Part shown: piece after piece, positions 18,894 to 32,590 of the stretch
How the letters are laid out: each line of letters opens with the position of its first letter
Position numbering within the stretch: position 1 is the first letter of the stretch
DNA from: Mytilus edulis
Taxonomy: Eukaryota
Assembly (NCBI RefSeq): GCF_963676685.1
Contig: NC_092353.1
Location: 12,958,001-13,022,000 of the forward strand
Direction: 5' to 3'
DNA: 64,000 nt
Notes under the pieces: generated by a model
Database searches by the model: none
What the model was told of the DNA's origin: nothing
Seen by the model: the letters and a program-made list of their open reading frames with translations, nothing else
Position numbers and translations under genes: made by a program

Positions 18894-21800
18894 TTCTGGG
18901 TGCCCGCAAATGAATTTAATTACAATAAAATGAAAATAAAATATGAAAATTTCACTTTGAATTACTGTCTCTGAAAACTTTGAATAGCTTTAACTGTCTT
19001 TGATCATGAGCACGGATAAAATAAAATTATTTTACATTTAACAGTTCATAAAATTATACGATAGTCTCATTTGGTCCACATCTTTATCTTTTCCTTTGCA
19101 TCGGTCTTCGCTCGTCTGGCGGGTAGTATTTCATCACACGGTCCTGTGTATTCATTAGATGTTAGTTCTAGAGGATATAACTTGCTAATAGGTCTAGACT
19201 TTTGACCATTTTTAGTCCGTAAAATAGCTGATCTGCTAAACCCATCTCGTCCTTGAATCAATTTGTCGATGATCCCTATATTCCAAGTTGTTCTTGAAGT
19301 TTCATCATGTATTAGAACTACCTCTCCAATATTAATATTCTGTGTGTCCACTCCTTTAGTTCGATGTTGTTCTCTAAGTGATGTAAGGTATTCACGTTTC
19401 CACCTTGTCCAGAAATTGTCAATGATATGATTTTGAATCTGTAACAATTTATTAGATGATGCTTAGGTTTTTTTTGGTGTGTTAAGGTTTTTTTTGGTGT
19501 GTTAAGGTTTTTGAATTTTCAATGTTTCCATCTAAAGTTCCGGTGTACGGTAAAATCGTAATTCTTCTTCCGTAGAGTAAATGTGAGGGTGTCAATGGTT
19601 CATTATCCGTTGGATCCGATGATAGGTACGTCAACGGACGATCATTAAGAATAGCTTCCACTTCTGTGACGATAGTTTCAAGTACACGTAAACTCACAAA
19701 TGCCTTTCCTAAAACTTTTTTTATACAGTTTTTTGTCAAACCTATTAATCTTTCCCACCAAACACCGTACCATTGTGCACGTTTCGGTATAAACTTCCAT
19801 ACTGTTCCATACGAATTTAATTGTTCATTTAAAAACGGTGACTTGGTCAGAAACTCTATTTTCTTTGCCGAAGCTACATAGGTTGTACCATTATCTGATA
19901 TCATGATTTTTGGTAATGACTTCCTGCTAGTAAATCGGCGAAACACTAAAATAAACGTCTCTTCTGTAAGATCTTCTACAATTTCTAGGAGTACGGCCCT
20001 TGTATTCGCACAAGTAAATAGGCAAATGTACGCTTTTCCTCCAACTTCATTTTTAGTTTTGATGCTCAATGCACCAGTAAAGTCAACGCCTGTTACAGTA
20101 AACGGCGGCGAATCTCTTAGTCTGTCTGCTGGTAGAGGCGGCGGGTCCGGAGTAGCCTACGGTCTTCCTGTAACCTTTCGGCAAGTAACACATTTGTGAA
20201 TAATTGTTTTCACATATTGTCGGATTGGTGGAATCCAGTAAAACTGTCGTAAAGAAGTGACAGTACTTTCTTATCCAGAGTGAAGTAGTCTATTGTGGGC
20301 ATCCATTATAATTAGAGTTGATAATGTATCCTTATTTGGCAATGATATCGGGAACTTGGCTGAAGCGGCAATAGGTGCGTTGTTTAAACGTCCGCCACAA
20401 CGTATTAACCTTTTCTCGTCCAGGTACAATTTCAACTGCTTTACAAGATTATTTTTTGACGTTTTCTGTTGTAAACTGTGAAACACATCCGGGTAAATTC
20501 GAAGCTGTGAATCCTGTATCCAAGCAACGGATGCTATCTGAATTTCCTCTACATTTACAGGTAGCTCCGGATCCAAATAAGACGGATTTGAATCGGTAAA
20601 CTGAGAGCTGACTTGTAGAGTCTGTAGGATCGGAAAATCAAAAAAAATCTAGTTACATCGCGGTCTTTTTCTTCTAAACCAACATTCAAAAGTTTCTGGT
20701 ACGCTCCATACCTATCTATATCCATGGTTTTATTTATTCCCACTGTAATACTTGTCGCTGTATCGTTTGTGTTTGTTGATAAGTTATCTTTGGTTAGAGT
20801 TGTATATATTAGAGCTTCTTCTTTTTTCCACTGAGGCCATTTTGCAGTATCAACAATCCATCCGGGGCCTTTCATCCATCATCCATTCACAGCTGTCATT
20901 ACCTCTTGAAAGTAAGTCTGCGGGGTTTGAATCAGTCGGAGAGTATCTCCAGGAAAATCCATGCGTAAGCTGATTTATTTCCGCAACTCTGTTTTTGACG
21001 AAAATCGGTACTTGTTTCTTAGTCATTAACCAACTCAGTGTAATTTGACTGTCACTCCAAAGTGTTGCTTGTGAAAAGCTGATATATGACTTCAAATGTT
21101 TCAGTAATCTACTCCCTATCATTGCTGCCATGAGCTCAAGTTTCGGAATTGTCATGTTTTTCAATGGGGCAAGTCTGTTTCTAGACATAATCAACGTAGA
21201 CTGGTCCCCGCAAACTACATATGCACATGCTCCATACACCTTTAAACTTGCATCTGTGAATATGTGTAGTGAAATATCTTCCGTTGATCTCCTTTCTTTG
21301 AAATACGGTCTTAATATTTCAGTCTCTATACATTCTTTTGTGTCTCGTTGAATTTCTTTCCATTCCATTATAGTTTCTGACGATAACGGTTCATCCCAAT
21401 CCAGTTTTTTCTCCCATAGGGTCTGCATGAACATTTTGCTCCTTACTGTTATCGGACTTATAATTCCTAGAGGGTCGTATATTTTTGAAGATTGTCTAAG
21501 AATTTCACGCTTTGTAATCAAATGATCCTCCATTTCGACGTATTCCTGTTTTGCGAAAGTAAGCGTGTCCTTGTCTGTATTCCATCTAAGTCCTAATACC
21601 TAGTACCTAATAAAGTTTGTCATTATCAAGTACATTTTCTGACGTTGCACGATCTTGTAAAGTCTTGTTGTTTGATACCCAAGAGCGTAAATTAAAACCC
21701 GCTTTTTTAAATAAGGTACGAGATGTGTCAAAATATTGTAGTAATTGGCTCTCGGCTGGAAAACTTGAAATTATGTTGTCAACGTAAAGATCCTTCTGTA

Positions 21801-21985
21801 TAGCATCAGTCCATTCACATGTATTTCACTTAGGTGCTTTTGAACAACGGCATTTAAAATAAATGGAGAACAGGTAGCTCCAAATAAGACGGATTTGAAT
21901 CGGTAAACTGAGAGCGGACTTGTAGAGTCTGTAGGATCGGAAAACTAAAAACATCTAGTTACATCACGGTCTTTCTCTTCTACCC

Positions 21986-22454
21986 AGGTTGCAGTCTTGT
22001 AATTGATTGCTCCATAGGCTTACATGCAAGACAGCTGATCTTCAAAAATTTTTTATTCAAAAATGCTACATAGAAAAAATATTTAGTCTACATATCATGC
22101 ATTTAGTAATGTTATACTATGATTTCATGCAAAAAAATGGCACCTTGCCACGAAGAATAAAAAGTTAATCAACCTCAATGTCAAAACTCCATTTTTCTAC
22201 TTTCTGTTTGCTGTTTTCATCCGACCGCACCACTTCTAGTAAACATGAGATCCTTCCACCTTCCTGTTTTAATTTCTGAAAAAAGATGCCATATTTTTGT
22301 TACATTTAAATAGTACTTTCAATTCATCACAAAGTTTTAATTAAACAGTTAATAGGCAGTGCAGAAAAAAATTCAGAAAAATTGGGACTATTTTATTACC
22401 CTCCATGTTTTGACATGCACCGGAAATTGAAAATGTAATACAAGACTGGTACCT
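21986..22454 (+). repeat. Long terminal direct repeat 1 (with its own TIRs)
   Basis: AGGTTGCAG...CTGGTACCT; near-identical to 26042-26512 and 29772-30225. Confidence 0.92.
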
Positions 22455-23140
22455 ACAACCGATTCAACATTGCTCGGAAAATTACTAAAAAATTATTTAA
22501 GAAAGAAGAACCATATTCTGACTTGTATGCCAAATTATTTTTGTATTACTATTAAATTGCGGCTAAAATTTCATTTTTTAGACTTGTACCCTTTTTGGGA
22601 TATTTCAGATTTTTTTTCTTTTTTTAACTATAGGGTCAACTCTAGTTTGTGCTTATAAATTTTTTCTATAGAAGATTTTAAGCTCAATGTGTGATATTTT
22701 TGTTCATTATATATTGATCTTACTAATTATTAAAGAAAAAACTGTATATTTTAATATTATGTAATTTTTATGTATCTTTAATTACTGTATTGTAAAAAAG
22801 TTGCTTTTTATCAAATAAAAGTTAGATTGTTTTCTTGGTGTTAGTTTTAATTCTTCATAATTAGATGACTCTGTGTAGCAGAATGTGTGTAGGTTCTTTT
22901 GACTGCTTGATGGTTTTATGGTACTTCACACCTAGGTTAGAATTGGGTCTTTAATGTCATGTGGTGGAATTCTATTGAATTGTCATTATCATCCCTAAGG
23001 TTCTAAGAGGCTGTAATATCTGGCATTTATATGCAATCAGGTGCATTTTTGTGGTGTTTTGACTTTTGACACAGTTGATTGATGATGTTGGAAAAGTATA
23101 AATTCAGAAGAATTTTCAAAATAGGCATCAGAGTTCAAAG

Positions 23141-25500
23141 ATGCCATATACAAGTAAGTCCAAAAGTGTACCGTTTAAGAAGGGAGATGATGATAGGAGA
23201 CTAATTCCTGTTGTTGAGTGGGATGAAAAGACTGAAATTAGAAAGAAATATGTCAGGCCAGATGCTGGCAAGACCAAAGAAGAAAGTTTGAATGACAAAG
23301 CCTTGACAATTTTGAAGGAAAATGTAACCAAGGTAGATAACTCAAAAAACTCAAAAGTAATATCTGTACTGAGACCAAAGCCTGGGGAATCCAGTGTGTT
23401 TGAAAGATATACAGACAACTTAATCAGAGGAGATAGGAACACCTATAGGTTTTTGCATGCAGATAGAACCTGTAAACTATTCACTAGAGCCTTTCATGAA
23501 CATTTGGAGCAGTCACCAGGCTGTTATGGGAACTTTCAATTTGATTATGATGCCGAAGAGCAGAGAACCATGTGTTGGAGAGAAAAAGTGGTTTGTACCC
23601 TGTGTAATTACGAGTCCTTGATGTACCCCTTGTATGAGGAGATAGAGGAGGAAGGAAAAAAGGGCAGGAAAGCAGGTGCTCCCAACAGAAGGTTGCAAAT
23701 TGGACTTGCAGATACAGGTATTTCAAATACTGCATGGTGCCAATTGATGCGTACCGTTAGCCATCCAGCTCCTTCAAGGACCGACATGCAGAGACAATCC
23801 AATGAATGTGGTGATATGTTGGTCGATATGAACAGGGAAGATATGAAACAGCAGCGACAAATTGTAAAACAAGCATTCTAATGCAACAACGTTTGTAACG
23901 TTCATTTTGATTGGATAACGTCACTTTCTTACATGGCATCAATTGACAATTGATGCTATGGGACGTACGCGCAAGCGCAGACGGCATATGACAGATTTTA
24001 AATACATGTTTTAACGTTGTTTTCTGTCAGTTTCATTAGAATGGAGATAACAATATTGTATTTTAAGCTCCGACGGCATCAATTTGGGATTTGATGGTCG
24101 CAAATACCCGTTTACTGTCTCCGCTAACGCGTCGCCAGTAAACTTAATTTGCGACCATCAAATCCCCACTTGATGCCGTCGGAGCTAAAAATACGATACA
24201 GTTATCTCCTAATTGGAGCGGTCAGGGTTTTCCAACTGACACACCGATACCAGCAGAATGTGACACTCGATACAACAATCCGCTGTTTGGATCTCGAACG
24301 AGGACCCCGTTTCAACCTGGGACACAAGCAACAACCACCATTGTTGAAAATGTGACAGCTAGGAAGAAGATCATTGCTGTACATGGTGCAAATAAGCTCT
24401 GCAAAACAGCCAGCTATCTAAGGTCAACTGGGGAAAATGCAATGTGTCCGGGACACAAAGGCCACTGTTCTGCAAACTTAAAACCATGGGACTCTATTGG
24501 TAATGAGGAATTGTATGGTGAATTACTGGCAGACCAATTAGCAGAAGATGAACAGCCTCTAGTTATTGGGCAATTAACAACAGATGGGGACAGCCATGCC
24601 TCCAGAGGTTTCAGCAAGAAACATAGTGAAAGTGTTAACCTGACACCAGAAAACTTGCGGGACCCACGACACTTGGCGTCAACACAATTGTGGAGCATTG
24701 ATAAGGCAGCTTTTAGTGAATTCATGTTTGACGGAAGGACGAAAGCAAACCGTGAGAAGATTCACAGGAGATTTTCCTTGGATTTAACCAACAGATGCAC
24801 TGTAGAATATAACTTTGCAATCAAGGAGGCTGCTGGGAAATTGGATAAACTTGTAAATAGACTAAGTTATGTAGCTGATTGTATTATTGACTGTTACACA
24901 GGACATTGTGGAGAGACATGCCGTGCCTATTCGTATATTTGTAAAGGGACAGAAAGTGATTTCTGGGGAAACGAGTTCTTGCCTGAACATGCCAGATGCC
25001 TTTATATGACAGAGGATGATGAAAAACTAGTGCGTGACTGTATGAACATAAGATTTGGGAGGAAAAACTTGGAGAAAACGCGATTGGGAACAAGTACCCA
25101 AAAATGTGAAGCTACAAACAGAGGATATAATAAGTCAAATCCTAAGGATATTACCTACCAGAGAAATTTTCCTGCTAGAATTCACTCCACTGCACATAGA
25201 ATTAATCATAGACCTGGAGAATCAGCTGTTTTAAAATGTGAAGCTCTTGGTGTACCACTTTCTCCAAATTCACGTCCGATCCATCAACTGAAAAGGGAAG
25301 ACGAAATTTATGAATACCACCAGTTGTGTAAAAAAAATCCTGTTGTTAAACATGAACGAACTGTTTCGAAACTTGAAAGATTTGAACTTTACGATGAAAA
25401 ATCTGTAGAAAAAGAGACATATCAGAAAGATCTGTTGGATTCAGAGAAGACTTTAACAAGTAAACGGAGAACTCGTGCTGATTTTTCTTATACAAAGTGA
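23141..25500 (+). pseudogene. DDE transposase, unit 1, split by a 334-bp insertion
   Basis: The 246-aa and 382-aa ORFs are the N- and C-terminal parts of the 676-aa protein of unit 2; the foreign sequence occupies 23878-24211. Confidence 0.9.
23878..24211. mobile_element. Non-autonomous double-hairpin insertion with apparent ATT target duplication
   Basis: Absent from unit 2 (GCATT|GGAGCG). Flanked by ATT at 23875-23877 and 24212-24214. Contains a long inverted repeat at 24043-24209. Confidence 0.8.
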
Positions 25501-25529
25501 TATTTCTGTATTTTACTTACTTACTGCAA

Positions 25530-25933
25530 CTAAATTATGCATTCTGGGTACATTCCATGTGTCTGACAGGTTTGTGGAACTAAATGTTTACATACTTGTC
25601 TGCTATTATTTATATTGGGAGGTTCTAGAGACAAATGTTCAGGATTTATACACAAACTATTGTGACATAGGTGCGAAACATGTAAATCCGCAGCCATCTC
25701 TGTTAGATCATTTTGTAACATAAACATGAATCTATGGGCCAGATAAAATTTTGTTCTTCCATTTGGCCACTTTACTTTAAGGCGACCATATTTTGGACCA
25801 CGAGTTAAACCCCTTTCTCTTTGATTGACCGAAAATAATGTCGACCAAAATTGACAACCCTTGGAATTTTGGACATTTGATCAATTTTTGAAATTAAGCC
25901 TGTTAATTGCACAACTTTCCACTGAGGATCCAT
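25530..25933 (-). pseudogene. His-Me finger endonuclease, unit 1 (1-bp frameshift near 25875)
   Basis: GGACATTTGA here versus GGACATTTTGA in unit 2 splits the ORF; the C-terminal SHLCHNSLCINPEHL...CQTHGMYPEC is intact. Confidence 0.85.
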
Positions 25934-26041
25934 TTTAAAAATACCATGAGGTAGTATAGTACCCAGAATATGTAAATCAGTTGCAGCATCCTGGGAAATT
26001 TGCATTTTTAACATGAAAAAAAATTCCAAAAATAACTACCC

Positions 26042-26512
26042 AGGTTGCAGTCTTGTAATTGATTGCTCCATAGGCTTACATGCAAAACAGCTGATCTTCA
26101 AAATTTTTTTATTCAAAAATACTACATAGAAAAAATATTAAGTCTACATATCATGCATTTAGTAATGTTATACTATGATTTCATGCAAAAAAAATGGCGC
26201 CTTGCCACGAAGAATAAAAAGTTAATCAACCTCAATGTCAAAACTCCATTTTTCTACTTTCTGTTTGCTGTTTTCATCCGACCGCACCACTTCTAGTAAA
26301 CATGAGATCCTTCCACCTTCCTGTTTTAATTTCTGAAAAAAAGATGCCATATTTTTGTTACATTTAAATAGTACTTTCAATTCATCACAAAGTTTTAATT
26401 AAACAGTTAATAGGCAGTGCAGAAAAAAATTCAGAAAAATTGGGACTATTTTATTACCCTCCATGTTTTGACATGCACCGGAAATTGAAAATGTAATACA
26501 AGACTGGTACCT
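26042..26512 (+). repeat. Long terminal direct repeat 2 (shared middle repeat)
   Basis: Same sequence as LTDR1 with a few substitutions; lies between the endonuclease of unit 1 and the transposase of unit 2. Confidence 0.92.
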
Positions 26513-27198
26513 ACAACCGATTCCACATTGCTCGGAAAATTACTAAAAAATTATTTAAGAAAGAAGAACCATATTCTGACTTGTATGCCAAATTATTTTT
26601 GTATTACTATTAAATTGCGGCTAAAATTTCATTTTTTAGACTTGTACCCTTTTTGGGATATTTCAGATTTTTTTTCTTTTTTTAACTATAGGGTCAACTC
26701 TAGTTTGTGCTTATAAATTTTTTCTATAGAAGATTTTAAGCTCAATGTGTGATATTTTTGTTCATTATATATTGATCTTACTAATTATTAAAGAAGAAAC
26801 TGTATATTTTAATAATATGTAATTTTTATGTATCTTTAATTACTGTATTGTAAAAAAGTTGCTTTTTATCAAATAAAAGTTAGATTGTTTTCTTGGTGTT
26901 AGTTTTAATTCTTCATAATTAGATGACTCTGTGTAGCAGAATGTGTGTAGGTTCTTTTGACTGCTTGATGGTTTTTTGGTACTTCACACCTAGGTTAGAA
27001 TTGGGTCTTTAATGTCATGTGGTGGAATTCTATTGAATTGTCATTATCATCCCTAAGGTTCTAAGAGGCTGTAATATCTGGCATTTATATGCAATCAGGT
27101 GCATTTTTGTGGTGTTTTGACTTTTGACACAGTTGATTGATGATGTTAGAAAAGTATAAATTCAGAAGAATTTTCAAAATAGGCATCAGAGTTCAAAG

Positions 27199-29229
27199 AT
27201 GCCATATACAAGTAAGTCCAAAAGTGTACCGTTTAAGAAGGGAGATGATGATAGGAGACTAATTCCTGTTGTTGAGTGGGATGAAAAGACTGAAATTAGA
27301 AAGAAATATGTCAGGCCAGATGCTGGCAAGACCAAAGAAGAAAGTTTGAATGACAAAGCCTTGACAATTTTGAAGGAAAATGTAACCAAGGTAGATAACT
27401 CAAAAAACTCAAAAGTAATATCTGTACTGAGACCAAAGCCTGGGGAATCCAGTGTGTTTGAAAGATATACAGACAACTTAATCAGAGGAGATAGGAACAC
27501 CTATAGGTTTTTGCATGCAGATAGAACCTGTAAACTATTCACTAGAGCCTTTCATGAACATTTGGAGCAGTCACCAGGCTGTTATGGGAACTTTCAATTT
27601 GATTATGATGCCGAAGAGCAGAGAACCATGTGTTGGAGAGAAAAAGTGGTTTGTACCCTGTGTAAATACGAGTCCTTGATGTACCCCTTGTATGAGGAGA
27701 TAGGGGAGGAAGGAAAAAAGGGCAGGAAAGCAGGTGCTCCCAACAGAAGGTTGCAAATTGGACTTGCAGATACAGGTATTTCAAATACTGCATGGTGCCA
27801 ATTGATGCGTACCGTTAGCCATCCAGCTCCTTCAAGGACCGACATGCAGAGACAATCCAATGAATGTGGTGATAGGTTGGTCGATATAAACAGGGAAGAT
27901 ATGAAACAGCAGCGACAAATTGTAAAACAAGCATTGGAGCGGTCAGGGTTCCCAACTGACACACCGATACCAGCAGAATGTGACACTCGATACAACAATC
28001 CGCTGTTTGGATCTCGAACGAGGACCCCGTTTCAACCTGGGAAACAAGCAACAACCACCATTGTTGAAAATGTGACAGCTAGGAAGAAGATCATTGCTGT
28101 ACATGGTGCAAATAAGCTCTGCAAAACAGCCAGCTATCTAAGGTCAACTGGGGAAAATGCAATTTGTCCGGGACACCAAGGCCACTGTTCTGCAAACCTA
28201 AAACCATGGGACTCTATTGGTAATGAGGAATTGTATGGTGAATTACTGGCAGACCAATTAGCAGAAGATGAACAGCCTCTAGTTATTGGGCAATTAACAA
28301 CAGATGGGGACAGCCATGCCTCCAGAGGTTTCAGCAAGAAACATAGTGAAAGTGTTAACCTGACACCAGAAAACTTGCGGGACCCACGACACTTGGCGTC
28401 AACACAATTGCGGAGCATTGATAAGGCAGCTTTTAGTGAATTCATGTTTGACGGAAGGACGAAAGCAAACCGTGAGAAGATTCACAGGAGATTTTCCTTG
28501 GATTTAACCAACAGATGCACTGTAGAATATAACTTTGCAATCAAGGAGGCTGCTGGGAAATTGGATAAACTTGTAAATAGACTAAGTTATGTAGCTGATT
28601 GTATTATTGACTGTTACACAGGACATTGTGGAGAGACATGCCGTGCCTATTCGTATATTTGTAAAGGGACAGAAAGTGATTTCTGGGGAAAAGAGTTCTT
28701 GCCTGAACATGCCAGATGCCTTTATATGACAGAGGATGATGAAAAACTAGTGCGTGACTGTATGAACATAAGATTTGGGAGGGAAAACTTGGAGAAAACG
28801 CGATTGGGAACAAGTACCCAAAAATGTGAAGCTACAAACAGAGGATATAATAAGTCAAATCCTAAGGATATTACCTACCAGAGAAATTTTCCTGCTAGAA
28901 TTCACCCCACTGCACATAGAATTAATCATAGACCTGGAGAATCAGCTGTTTTAAAATGTGAAGCTCTTGGTGTACCACTTTCTCCAAATTCACGTCCGAT
29001 CCATCAACTGAAAAGGGAAAACGAAATTTATGAATACCACCATAATGGCCAGTTGCGTAAAAAAAATCCTGTTGTTAAACATGAACGAACTGTTTCGAAA
29101 CTTGAAAGATTTGAACTTTACGATGAAAAATCTGTAGAAAAAGAGACATATCAGAAAGATCTGTTGGATTCAGAGAAGACTTTAACAAGTAAACGGAGAA
29201 CTCGTGCTGATTTTTCTTATACAAAGTGA
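27199..29229 (+). CDS. DDE transposase (Kolobok/Mutator-like fold), 676 aa, uninterrupted
   Basis: Putative catalytic motifs AECDTRYN, TTDGDS and TQKCEATNR; DPRH motif; N-terminal H..C/CxxC zinc-binding cluster; located inside TIR-bearing repeats. Confidence 0.85.
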   Translation: MPYTSKSKSVPFKKGDDDRRLIPVVEWDEKTEIRKKYVRPDAGKTKEESLNDKALTILKENVTKVDNSKNSKVISVLRPKPGESSVFERYTDNLIRGDRNTYRFLHADRTCKLFTRAFHEHLEQSPGCYGNFQFDYDAEEQRTMCWREKVVCTLCKYESLMYPLYEEIGEEGKKGRKAGAPNRRLQIGLADTGISNTAWCQLMRTVSHPAPSRTDMQRQSNECGDRLVDINREDMKQQRQIVKQALERSGFPTDTPIPAECDTRYNNPLFGSRTRTPFQPGKQATTTIVENVTARKKIIAVHGANKLCKTASYLRSTGENAICPGHQGHCSANLKPWDSIGNEELYGELLADQLAEDEQPLVIGQLTTDGDSHASRGFSKKHSESVNLTPENLRDPRHLASTQLRSIDKAAFSEFMFDGRTKANREKIHRRFSLDLTNRCTVEYNFAIKEAAGKLDKLVNRLSYVADCIIDCYTGHCGETCRAYSYICKGTESDFWGKEFLPEHARCLYMTEDDEKLVRDCMNIRFGRENLEKTRLGTSTQKCEATNRGYNKSNPKDITYQRNFPARIHPTAHRINHRPGESAVLKCEALGVPLSPNSRPIHQLKRENEIYEYHHNGQLRKKNPVVKHERTVSKLERFELYDEKSVEKETYQKDLLDSEKTLTSKRRTRADFSYTK

Positions 29230-29258
29230 TATTTCTGTATTTTACTTACTTACTGCAA

Positions 29259-29663
29259 CTAAATTATGTATTCTGGGTACATTCCATGTGTCTGACAGGT
29301 TTGTGGAACTAAATGTTTACATACTTGTCTGCTATTATTTATATTGGGAGGTTCTAGAGACAAATGTTCAGGATTTATACACAAACTATTGTGACATAGG
29401 TGCGAAACATGTAAATCCGCAGCCATCTCTGTTAGATCATTTTGTAACATAAACATGAATCTATGGGCCAGATAAAATTTTGTTCTTCCATTTGGCCACT
29501 TTACTTTAAGGCGACCATATTTTGGACCACGAGTTAAACCCCTTTCTCTTTGATTGACCGAAAATACTGTCGACCAAAATTGACAACCCTTGGAATTTTG
29601 GACATTTTGATCAATTTTTGAAATTAAGCCTACTAATTGCACAACTTTCCACTGAGGATCCAT
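29259..29663 (-). CDS. His-Me finger (His-Cys box/I-PpoI-like) endonuclease, about 134 aa from MDPQW (frame open upstream to 29759)
   Basis: CQFW...KYG...YLAHR...VSHLCHNSLCINPEHLSLEPPNINNSRQVC is the zinc-binding loop/beta-beta-alpha-Me signature of His-Cys box homing endonucleases. Confidence 0.88.
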   Translation of the reverse strand: MDPQWKVVQLVGLISKIDQNVQNSKGCQFWSTVFSVNQRERGLTRGPKYGRLKVKWPNGRTKFYLAHRFMFMLQNDLTEMAADLHVSHLCHNSLCINPEHLSLEPPNINNSRQVCKHLVPQTCQTHGMYPEYII

Positions 29664-29771
29664 TTTAAAAATACCATGAGGTAGTATAGTACCCAGAATA
29701 TGTAAATCAGTTGCAGCATCCTGGGAAATTTGCATTTTTAGCATGAAAAAAAATTCCAAAAATCACTACCC

Positions 29772-30225
29772 AGGTTGCAGTCTTGTAATTGATTGCTCCA
29801 TAGGCTTACATGCAAAACAGCTGATCTTCAAAAATGCTCATAGAAAAAATATTTAGTCTACATATCATGCATTTAGTAATGTTATACTATGATTTCATGC
29901 AAAAAAAATGGCACCTTGCCTCGAAGAATAAAAATTTAATCAACCTCAATGTCAAAACTCCATTTTTCTACTTTCTGTTTGCTGTTTTCATCCGACCGCA
30001 CCACTTCTAGTAAACATGAGATCCTTCTACCTTCCTGTTTTAATTTTTGAAAAAAGATGCCATATTTTTGTTACATTTAAATAGTACTTTCAATTCATCA
30101 CAAAGTTTTAATTAAACAGTAAATAGGCAGTGCAGAAAAAAATTCAGAAAAATTGGGACTATTTTATTACCCTCCATGTTTTGACATGCACCGGAAATTG
30201 AAAATGTAATACAAGACTGGTACCT
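29772..30225 (+). repeat. Long terminal direct repeat 3
   Basis: Same sequence, with a deletion of about 15 bp between two TTCAAAAAT micro-repeats. Confidence 0.92.
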
Positions 30226-32590
30226 AAACCAACATTCAAAATGCTTTTTCAATATCTGTTGAAACTGCCCATTGGTTTAATCGAAATCTAAGTAAAATAC
30301 CTGTTAACTCGTTTGGATCAGGTGGTGTATCCATTAAACAGTCGTTTAAGCTAGGAGTTTCTTGTCTTGCTCTACAGCTACAGTCAAACACTATCCTAAT
30401 AGGTGTAGTCGACGATTCTTTTTTGACGGCATGATGCGGTATGTAGTGTACTGTGTTATTAGTCGCTGTGTCTTCTCCTATCTTCTCTATAAATCCTATT
30501 CTTTCTTGTTCACCTATTATTTCTCCGTATTTCTGTAATAAATGCGGTTCCTTCTTCAGTCGTTTAATTACGTTTTCTGTTCTGCAATGGGCTATTTCTT
30601 TGTTCATTGGTAATGGTGGATGCTCTTCTTTCCAGGGTAATGTAGCAAAATATCTGTTGTCATGGTAACTGATACATGTCTTCTCATATACTTCTTTTAA
30701 TTCCTTGTTCCCTGTTTCCTTCTCATCTATTTGCTCAATTCCAAGTGTTTCTAACTTCCAAAACTTCTCCAGGTCGCATTCTTCTGTCTTTCTTGATGTC
30801 ATTACATTCATCATAGATGTTGGCTGGTCATTGTAACTTAGTGTACCGTGAAGTGGTCCTACAGTAAATAACCTATTTTTGATTTCACGGCAGTAGGTTC
30901 CTCACCTCTAATGATATCGTTTTCTATAATTGACCAATAGTAGTCGGCTCCTACGAGTACTGAGACTTGGAAATTGTCGTTCGCGGTAACTGGATGTGCG
31001 AGTTTTATCTCGGATAAATATGACAATTTAGCAGCTTTGCGGATGTAAGTTTGGAGTGGTGCGGCGATTTCCGATACTATCAATACTCTGATCGGCAGTT
31101 TTCTTTCGTCTGTGAGCAAATAAATAGTTCCAGTTTTTAAGTGTCTAATTTTCGTACTTTCTGCACTGTCCCCGAACCCGGATAAATTTTTCTGTGCCAG
31201 TTATTGATAACTGCAATTTAGCGGCTAAGTCTTCTGTGATGAACGACCTCTGTGCACCTTCATCAAAAAGAATGTTGGCTTCTAAAGATTGTAGTCCTGA
31301 ACTTACAGGGTTTATTGCGGTTTTGAGCATTACATTCGTGGTTGCCTGTGAATGTAAAATTGTGTCCGTTTCCTTCGCGCTGTGTTGAATGGTACTTACG
31401 TTCACACTATCTTCTTTATCTATTTGTGCATTATCCTTACATAAACTCGTGTGATGACGCTTATGACATTTTCTGCATGTTTTATTTGACTTACAATCAA
31501 CCAAGTTATGATGTCCTAAACAGTTGAAGCATAGGCGGTCTCTTTTTACTATTGACATGCCGTCTTTATATTCAGTTACTTTGGTACAATTTACAGAGGC
31601 GTGTGATTCGTGACAATAATCGCACTGTTTAGATTTGAAGTTAGTGTTTTGGTGATTCTTATTTTGGTGGCTGTGACTTGCTAGGTTTTTTCGAATTTCC
31701 CCTGGTAGTTTGTTCAATATTATTGGCACTAACAACGCTCCGTATGAATCATCAGTTTGTCCTAGTGATTCTAAACCTCTTATGTAAATTTGAATGTTGT
31801 CATAAAAATGTCGGAGGTTGAAAAGTGTGTACCTATGAGACGTAATATCAATAAGTTCCTGCATATACCTCTGTGTAATTTTATGTTGCTGACCATATCT
31901 TTCTTGTAATAGGGAAATTGCCTTTTCATAATTTGCATTAGTGAGGGCAAAACCTGTCATTGATTTTAGAGCTTCATCATGAAGTAACGATTTCAAATAA
32001 TTGAATTTTTGGACGTTGCTTAAGGTTGGGTTCGTATGCACGGCTGTCTCAAATGAGTCCCCAAATGATTGCCATTGAAGTATATCTCCATCGACAGTAG
32101 GGAGATTCAACTTGGGTAGTTTGTTGTATTCACTAGTTGAGCTAAAGGATGGGCGAAATTCTGACAAACGGTAATTTGAGTTGTTCTGGTGTTCTGAATA
32201 TGAAGAGTTTATAGTATGAACGGGTTAAGTAGTTTCTATTCGTAGAGTAAAAACTTTCTGCGTGTGTATTCAACGATGTAGTTTTGACTAAGATGAATTT
32301 GTTGACTTCACGAATTTTACCTTCTAAGTTAAATGCATACTCATCTGCTTCAACGATCTCTGTTTCAATATCTCCGTCGTCCAGTTCCTGTACTGTGTCC
32401 TAATCTAACTTGCGTAATATTTCTTGCTTCCGTTTCAGACTATCCAATAAGTATGACAAATCCTCCGTGTCCACGGTTTCATCATCTTCCTGTTGAACAT
32501 CTTCAAATTTCTTTATCAGTCTGGAAACTGCACTTCTATGTCCTGCTCGTATCGAACGTAGCTTCAGATTCATCCTGGTCTCGGTACCAA

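Follow-up and report, generated by a model that had tools for sequence, protein, structure and literature searches.

The 64,000-nucleotide stretch of the Mytilus edulis genome analysed here (assembly GCF_963676685.1, contig NC_092353.1, positions 12,958,001 to 13,022,000 of the forward strand; hereafter the window, whose own numbering is used throughout) contains, at 21987-30224, a mobile element in which three direct repeats alternate with two internal regions. A repeat search, a three-way alignment of the repeats and exact pattern matches give the layout LTDR-INT-LTDR-INT-LTDR, where LTDR stands for long terminal direct repeat and INT for internal region. The INT of the second unit encodes a transposase and, convergent with it, a His-Me finger nuclease, and the INT of the first carries broken copies of the same two genes. 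The element is very probably a dimeric copy, (LTDR-INT)2-LTDR, of KolobokP, a lineage of DNA transposons in the Kolobok superfamily, that entered a BEL/Pao long terminal repeat (LTR) retrotransposon at a TAAA site. Its features and those of its host are the following.

19482-32167, minus strand: host BEL/Pao LTR retrotransposon with gag, reverse transcriptase (RT), Peptidase_A17/RNase H and integrase open reading frames (ORFs), recognised by Pfam matches and paralog comparison
21981-21986: left target-site duplication (TSD), damaged, TA + CCCA instead of TAAA, from six empty sites and the junction alignment
21987-22453, plus strand: LTDR1, 467 bp, with ends 5'-GGTTGCAGTCTTGTA...TACAAGACTGGTACC-3'
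22454-26042, plus strand: INT1, the internal region of unit 1, defective, from the unit alignment
23141-25500, plus strand: transposase pseudogene of unit 1, ORFs 23141-23881 and 24352-25500, split by the inserted repeat
23876-24212: 337-bp insertion, a very high-copy short repeat found neither in unit 2 nor in other samples' copies
25530-26029, minus strand: His-Me nuclease pseudogene of unit 1, with a 1-bp indel near 25875 that leaves ORFs of 65 and 74 residues
26043-26511, plus strand: LTDR2, 469 bp, the middle repeat common to both units
26512-29772, plus strand: INT2, unit 2's internal region, with transposase and nuclease genes intact, from the ORF list and unit alignment
27199-29229, plus strand: intact DDE transposase of 676 residues, Pfam PF20700 at 2.4e-44
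29259-29744, minus strand: His-Cys-box His-Me finger nuclease, about 161 residues from the first ATG (29744), PF05551 at 3e-13
29773-30224, plus strand: LTDR3, 452 bp, with a private 16-bp deletion and five private substitutions
30225-30228: right TSD, TAAA, intact, in the canonical junction ...GGTACC-TAAA-CCAAC

All three LTDRs start with GGTTGCAGTCTTGTA and end with TACAAGACTGGTACC, and comparison of GGTTGCAGTCTTGTA with the reverse complement of the opposite end, GGTACCAGTCTTGTA, shows imperfect inverted ends complementary at 13 of 15 positions. With termini GG...CC (5'-RR...YY-3') and short terminal inverted repeats (TIRs) of its own, each LTDR is a miniature TIR element. Subterminal inverted motifs, CATGCAAAACAG on the 5' side and CATGTTTTGACATG on the 3' side, lie about 40-55 nucleotides from each LTDR end, within the blocks best conserved in a sister family whose LTDRs are 80% identical to those of the window, and may be transposase-binding sites. 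A 10-bp palindrome in the LTDR, TTTAATTAAA, considered as a candidate nuclease site, was discarded, as it is not kept in that sister family.

Alignment of unit 1 (21983-26038) with unit 2 (26039-29768) shows 31 substitutions over about 3720 aligned bases (0.83%), together with the 337-bp insertion in unit 1, one 9-bp indel and four 1-bp indels. Unit 1 is a dead, decayed copy in which transposase and nuclease are both broken. LTDR2-INT2-LTDR3, as judged from its reading frames, is a structurally intact and presumably autonomous monomer. The original prediction, made from the letters of the DNA alone, had described repeats bounding a transposase and a nuclease in tandem, with one repeat shared; the three direct copies of about 470 bp and the two internal regions agree with it. 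It had also given each repeat inverted ends of 16 bp, of which the ends themselves stand and the length becomes 15 bp, imperfectly matched, and it had placed the same gene pair in both units, which is right for the arrangement and wrong for the intactness, since only unit 2 has both genes whole. Reads cover the 337-bp insertion to a depth of about 370, compared with about 3-6 over the remaining INT, and contigs of three sequencing runs (X1, X15 and X7) skip it. The insertion holds an internal inverted repeat of 63 nucleotides (24043-24105 and 24147-24209).

The transposase was aligned with nine paralogs from the same genome, to which it is 32-36% identical. Its conserved residues are the following.

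D262, D369 and E544: catalytic candidates, invariant across the nine genome paralogs
residues 395-398: DxxH motif, with D395, R397 and H398 in invariant columns
C308/C323/H326/C330: CCHC cluster after the first D, with only C308 and C330 in invariant columns among the paralogs
C472, C481 and C488: cysteines before E544, in invariant columns
H121/C128/C152/C155: N-terminal H/C residues, an H/C cluster of this region being among the invariant columns of the paralog alignment

The candidate catalytic residues stand in invariant contexts: D262 in D-x-Y-N-N, D369 in T-T-D and E544 in T-Q-K-x-E-x-x-N-R. The protein, encoded on the direct strand of the element, thus combines a C/DxxH motif with a CCHC cluster that follows its first D and a zinc finger that precedes its last E. 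A text search of the supplement of the paper describing KolobokP (PMC9587614) shows that named KolobokP transposases share the same layout and the motif strings D-G-R-Y-N-N-P-L-F, T-T-D-G-D-S-H-A and T-Q-K-C-E-A-x-N; families with these motifs include KolobokP-7_GiAe, KolobokP-1_MeMe, KolobokP-2_MiYe and KolobokP-2_PeMa. The PF20700 match and the conserved DDE residues are strong evidence that the 676-residue ORF encodes a probable DDE transposase.

The nuclease ORF extends over 29259-29759 on the minus strand (166 codons) and matches the Pfam family zf-His_Me_endon (PF05551). It lies downstream of the transposase on the complementary strand, the two stop codons being 29 bp apart and the nuclease start 29 bp from LTDR3. 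Profile searches of both proteins, proposed as a check on the original prediction, thus returned a transposase (PF20700 at 2.4e-44) and a His-Me nuclease (PF05551 at 3e-13). The predicted homing-endonuclease-like nature of the convergent gene is further borne out by alignment with I-PpoI, whose chains match the nuclease at an E-value of about 1e-3 through VSHLCHNSLCINPEHLSLEPPNINN. I-PpoI residues S97, H98, H110, E114 and N119 all have equivalents in the nuclease at identical spacing. The resemblance to the His-Cys-box homing endonucleases that group I introns encode, I-PpoI among them, also extends to the Cys/His zinc ligands; unlike these intron-encoded enzymes, the nuclease of the window is transposon cargo. 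Motif by motif, it also agrees with the KolobokP nucleases aligned in PMC9587614. The C-terminal 22 residues of the nuclease (29259-29324; ...VCKHLVPQTCQTHGMYPEYII) faintly resemble one repeat of transcription activator-like (TAL) effectors. TAL effectors came out as the top Protein Data Bank (PDB) matches of the nuclease, with a summed, spurious E-value near 1e-21, because this tail weakly matches every repeat and the scores add; the individual matches each have E >100, and the hits were rejected as an artefact.

The dimer interrupts the RT region of the BEL/Pao host, to which the minus-strand ORFs of the flanks, including Peptidase_A17, rve and an RT fragment, all belong. No RT or integrase lies between the direct repeats and INT codes for transposase and nuclease only, by which identity as an LTR retrotransposon was rejected; the original prediction had reported that reverse transcriptase was absent, and the RT, RNase H and integrase nearby are indeed those of the host. 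Six BEL paralogs of the genome show the empty site ...CGGTCTTTCTCTTC-TAAA-CCAACATTCAAAA... (TCTTC-TAAA-CCAAC). As these paralogs are uninterrupted, the whole 8.2-kb block is one insertion. The family duplicates 4 bp of target, and at this locus the right-hand TAAA is intact and the left side reads TACCCA: the left junction is TCTTCTA-CCCA-GGTTGCAG, with CCCA in place of the 'AA' of the expected TAAA. The same CCCA forms the last four nucleotides of INT, directly before LTDR2 and LTDR3, and CTACCCA-GG is present at all three LTDRs.

The extent of the element was set by comparison across the family in the 1.37-Gb assembly, whose contigs are labelled C1-C8 below. CCCA lies outside the LTDR in the copies examined on C1, C2 and C4, and these copies, together with the TSDs of the sister family, place the ends at 21987 and 30224, each one base inside the limits first proposed (21986-30225), with a 4-bp target duplication. 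An initial reading of the TSD as CTA, with element ends CCC...GTAC, was replaced after this comparison. Within the host, the RT segment of about 120 bp in which KolobokP inserted is present a second time, unbroken, at 20572-20691. It lies at a distance of 1.3 kb from the filled site and constitutes a local empty site; its presence indicates an internal rearrangement of this BEL copy.

KolobokP was described in 2022 by Kojima and Bao (Mob DNA 13:24; PMC9587614) as a Kolobok lineage of structure LTDR-INT-LTDR, with LTDRs of about 450 or 660 bp (445-480 bp for the short class in their table), TIRs of 11-18 bp or longer, termini 5'-RR...YY-3' and TSDs of 3-5 bp, of 4 bp for most families with LTDRs of about 450 bp. 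Its genes are a DDD/E transposase, whose first D is followed by a CCHC finger and whose C/DxxH and last E enclose a zinc finger, and a convergent His-Cys-box nuclease; its hosts centre on bivalves, in which it is especially common; and it occurs as solo LTDRs, as (LTDR-INT)n-LTDR multimers, dimers being common in the published census, and with LTDR-less INT-INT junctions (PMC9587614). The window and the rest of its genome agree with this in LTDRs of about 450-470 bp with 15-16-bp TIRs and RR...YY ends, a 4-bp TSD as the rule of the family, of which the window keeps the right-hand copy intact, a transposase with CCHC and second zinc finger, a convergent His-Cys-box nuclease, a mollusc host, solo LTDRs, multimers and INT-INT junctions, and a monomer of about 4.2 kb. 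Nothing categorical separates them, although the window copy has a non-canonical left junction. Layout, gene pair, LTDR length, 4-bp duplication, solo LTDRs and multimers are all found in the paper, and the assignment to KolobokP in the original prediction was therefore right. Its mechanistic ideas (circles, and nuclease-stimulated recombination between LTDRs) are those of the published models, which comprise unequal crossover, LTDR-INT circles, nuclease-induced misaligned repair and LTDRs as mobile units (Fig. 5 of PMC9587614). Its remark that mechanism and nuclease role were unsettled was fair, a 2026 review stating that the nuclease model still 'awaits experimental confirmation'.

Canonical Kolobok elements, which have a single TIR pair and a TTAA duplication, share with the window copy the transposase superfamily, a T-rich 4-bp duplication (TNNW, often TTAA, TAAA or TTTA) and RR/YY termini; they differ in having neither LTDRs nor a His-Me nuclease. 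As in bacterial composite and IS26-type pseudo-compound transposons, the unit is bounded by two smaller self-mobile elements and could form circles of the translocatable-unit kind, but in KolobokP it is the internal region and not the flanking repeats that carries the transposase, the repeats are direct in every case and the host is a eukaryote. Tandem arrays of LTR retrotransposons and of terminal-repeat retrotransposons in miniature (TRIMs) show the same succession of repeat, internal region, repeat, internal region and repeat, derived from exchange between terminal direct repeats, and leave solo repeats as well; they are distinguished from KolobokP, in which reverse transcription plays no part and the LTDRs, bounded by TIRs, transpose independently.

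Results of a transposase search show that unit 2 holds the only uninterrupted transposase of the window's family in the assembly. Its relatives within the family comprise a decayed monomer on C2, split by about 12 kb of other DNA and flanked by TTAT on both sides; a solo LTDR at C1:89145285-89145751 (locus L007, 5286-5752), 99% identical to LTDR1 and without a TSD (CACA versus TTAT), whose left flank ACCCACA loosely resembles an INT end; and a solo LTDR on C4 of about 89% identity. The sister family, which is nonautonomous, numbers at least 733 candidate copies. A perfect TNNW duplication of 4 bp borders its 5'-GG...CC-3' ends directly at 10 of 12 solo LTDRs and at all 3 monomers, in agreement with the earlier suggestion that LTDRs are mobile units. 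Since the same end signature, 5'-GG...CC-3' with a 4-bp T-rich duplication, is found on solo LTDRs, monomers and multimers, any left TIR and any right TIR can define a mobile unit. The core of the window family's TIR was not found in the text of the 228 consensus sequences of PMC9587614, a search weakened by line breaks in that text, and exact peptides of the family gave only shared motifs there; the family may not yet be catalogued. INT as a whole (query 22424-26090) has matches of at least 99% identity among contigs from runs of three species labels and from 'mollusc metagenome' runs, which indicates a family common to close relatives and probably young. In the runs of the three species labels, these contigs are without the 337-bp insertion, and positions that distinguish the two units have sometimes the unit-1-type and sometimes the unit-2-type state; private changes are therefore present in both units.

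More distant KolobokP transposases (32-40% identity) are numerous in the genome and often regularly spaced at 3.6-4.8 kb, and a convergent nuclease ORF follows the transposase at 10 of 10 paralogous loci fetched. Arrays are present on C2, C3, C4, C5 and C8, so that multimers of the form (LTDR-INT)n-LTDR accompany the solo LTDRs. The C2 array (C2:54190294-54235578; loci L046, L030 and L040) comprises 12 LTDRs and 11 near-identical units of 4074 bp. Its outer 4-mers are mismatched (AAAA versus TATA), and INT-like nucleotides stand outside both terminal LTDRs, CTCT on one side and A+GGGAG on the other. The C4 array is flanked by TTCA on both sides and a monomer on C6 by TATA on both sides. The C5 array (C5:27615717-27632611; L034 and L042) mixes 4030-bp units with units of 3576 bp that are without an LTDR; the shorter units (454 bp less) represent INT-INT junctions, and one end of the array lies at an assembly gap.

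Two other explanations of the locus were weighed against a KolobokP dimer. The sole Pfam match of the transposase is named 'Mutator-like transposase', and Kolobok is treated as closely related to MuDR, P and hAT (PMC9587614), which would suit a Mutator-like element (MULE). This is very improbable: a profile search of the 676-residue protein finds none of the classical MULE/MuDR families at E-values up to 1, the TSD is of 4 bp and TTAA-like where MULE/MuDR elements have 8-10 bp, the TIRs are of 15 bp instead of long, with 5'-RR...YY-3' ends, and the protein has between DxxH and E the zinc finger that MuDR, P and hAT lack (PMC9587614), besides agreeing over its full length with the motifs of named KolobokP proteins. 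Alternatively, the dimer could be an artefact of assembly, a single monomer heterozygous for the 337-bp insertion whose two haplotypes were threaded in tandem through near-identical LTDRs. A divergence of 0.83% between units and a presence/absence indel are possible for bivalve alleles, and elsewhere in the assembly there is no second allelic copy of the family. The window is free of N and gaps, however, and the 8.2-kb block is well inside long-read length; each of the three LTDRs has private changes; KolobokP arrays with up to 11 or more identical units are numerous in this genome and cannot be allelic; and dimers are common in the published census (PMC9587614). Such a haplotype mis-join is thus unlikely.

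Several points nevertheless weigh against the identification as a KolobokP dimer. The dimer arrangement is that of the assembly. The runs compared consisted of short reads or of k-mer contigs; neither can bridge an LTDR of 470 bp, so that they gave no test of the arrangement, and the flank is itself repetitive, which makes depth uninformative. The single raw-read run comes from an individual without the private variants of unit 1. As to the transposase, the Pfam family carries the name 'Mutator-like', PDB sequence and profile searches gave no meaningful match to a solved structure, and an AlphaFold2 model built from the 10-sequence alignment was too poor to be used (pLDDT 52, pTM 0.37), so that an RNase H fold is presumed from the primary structure.

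The origin of the dimer was approached through the differences among its repeats. Polarised with four outgroup copies, these are all private to one LTDR (two in LTDR1, five in LTDR2, and five plus the 16-bp deletion in LTDR3), from which it follows that the three LTDRs were identical when formed. The same polarisation removed an apparent sign of unequal crossover, a chimeric LTDR2 resembling LTDR3 in its 5' part and LTDR1 in its 3' part, as it showed private derived changes only. The private LTDR changes hold no signal separating crossover, circle integration and transposition as a dimer. Divergence among the LTDRs (1.5-2.1%) and between the INTs (0.8%) is of the same order, which makes the dimer and the insertion about equally old. 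Its formation would have coincided with the insertion or followed it shortly, through homology-directed repair between misaligned copies or through an unequal exchange of LTDRs. The transposase or the His-Cys-box nuclease would have broken the left end, and repair synthesis would have run from an internal LTDR into the terminal few nucleotides of INT, the INT-LTDR junction serving as template, and the new strand would then have been rejoined to the flank via the CTA microhomology.

The left junction looks like a scar of such repair or template copying. Break-induced templated copying, the 'induced unequal crossover' of Kojima and Bao, fits it better than a reciprocal crossover, because crossover leaves the duplication intact. 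Scar-like outer ends, TA+CCCA at a CTA microhomology in the window and INT-like nucleotides on both sides of the C2 array, are also the ground on which we suggest, tentatively, that KolobokP multimers owe their growth or mobilisation to break-induced templated copying in which INT-LTDR junctions are the template, and not to simple unequal crossover of the reciprocal kind. If this were true, the published census, which covered only insertions with recognisable TSDs (PMC9587614), would have missed a class of scar-ended elements. The scar reading is drawn from one junction, and an internal piece of a donor multimer with 4 nucleotides of INT, followed by a 2-nucleotide loss, would give the same left junction. 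The element would in that case already have been a dimer or longer multimer at the donor and have moved whole through its outermost TIRs, taking along four nucleotides of donor INT (CCCA) at the left. The sequence CCCA, possibly CTACCCA, to the left of LTDR1 is the 3' end of INT; excision carries 1-5 flanking bp on one side (PMC9587614); the three LTDRs were identical at formation; and the C2 array has INT-like nucleotides outside both terminal LTDRs too. This transfer would, however, leave TAAA+CCCA at the left, and the TA+CCCA observed requires an extra loss of two nucleotides; 8 kb makes a long substrate for an enzyme of the cut-and-paste type, and no donor multimer of the window's family is left in the assembly. 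Movement as a ready-made multimer is accordingly doubtful.

KolobokP has been in print since 2022, together with its composite-like layout, multimers and nuclease cargo, and as a class nothing is added here. What goes beyond the literature is the damaged left junction, to which the ends of the C2 array offer a parallel, and the availability of a whole unit next to a dead one at a locus whose empty sites are defined. The damaged junction is a small, testable hint toward repair-synthesis models. LTDR2-INT2-LTDR3 is an intact, presumably autonomous and apparently young copy adjoining its dead sister unit, and the locus is a convenient substrate for experiments on the cleavage target of the nuclease and on multimer formation.

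A further arrangement is seen in the family represented by loci L030, L035 and L039 (on C2, C4 and C6). No INT TIRs of the kind described here are visible in the window's family. In the L030, L035 and L039 family, every LTDR-INT boundary is a TATA spacer, and the INT ends are degenerate and TIR-like, GGGAGAATTT... and ...AATTGTCTCT, resembling the LTDR TIR GGGGTAAATTC. These spacers and INT ends indicate that its arrays are made of alternating TIR-bounded modules separated by 4-bp spacers.

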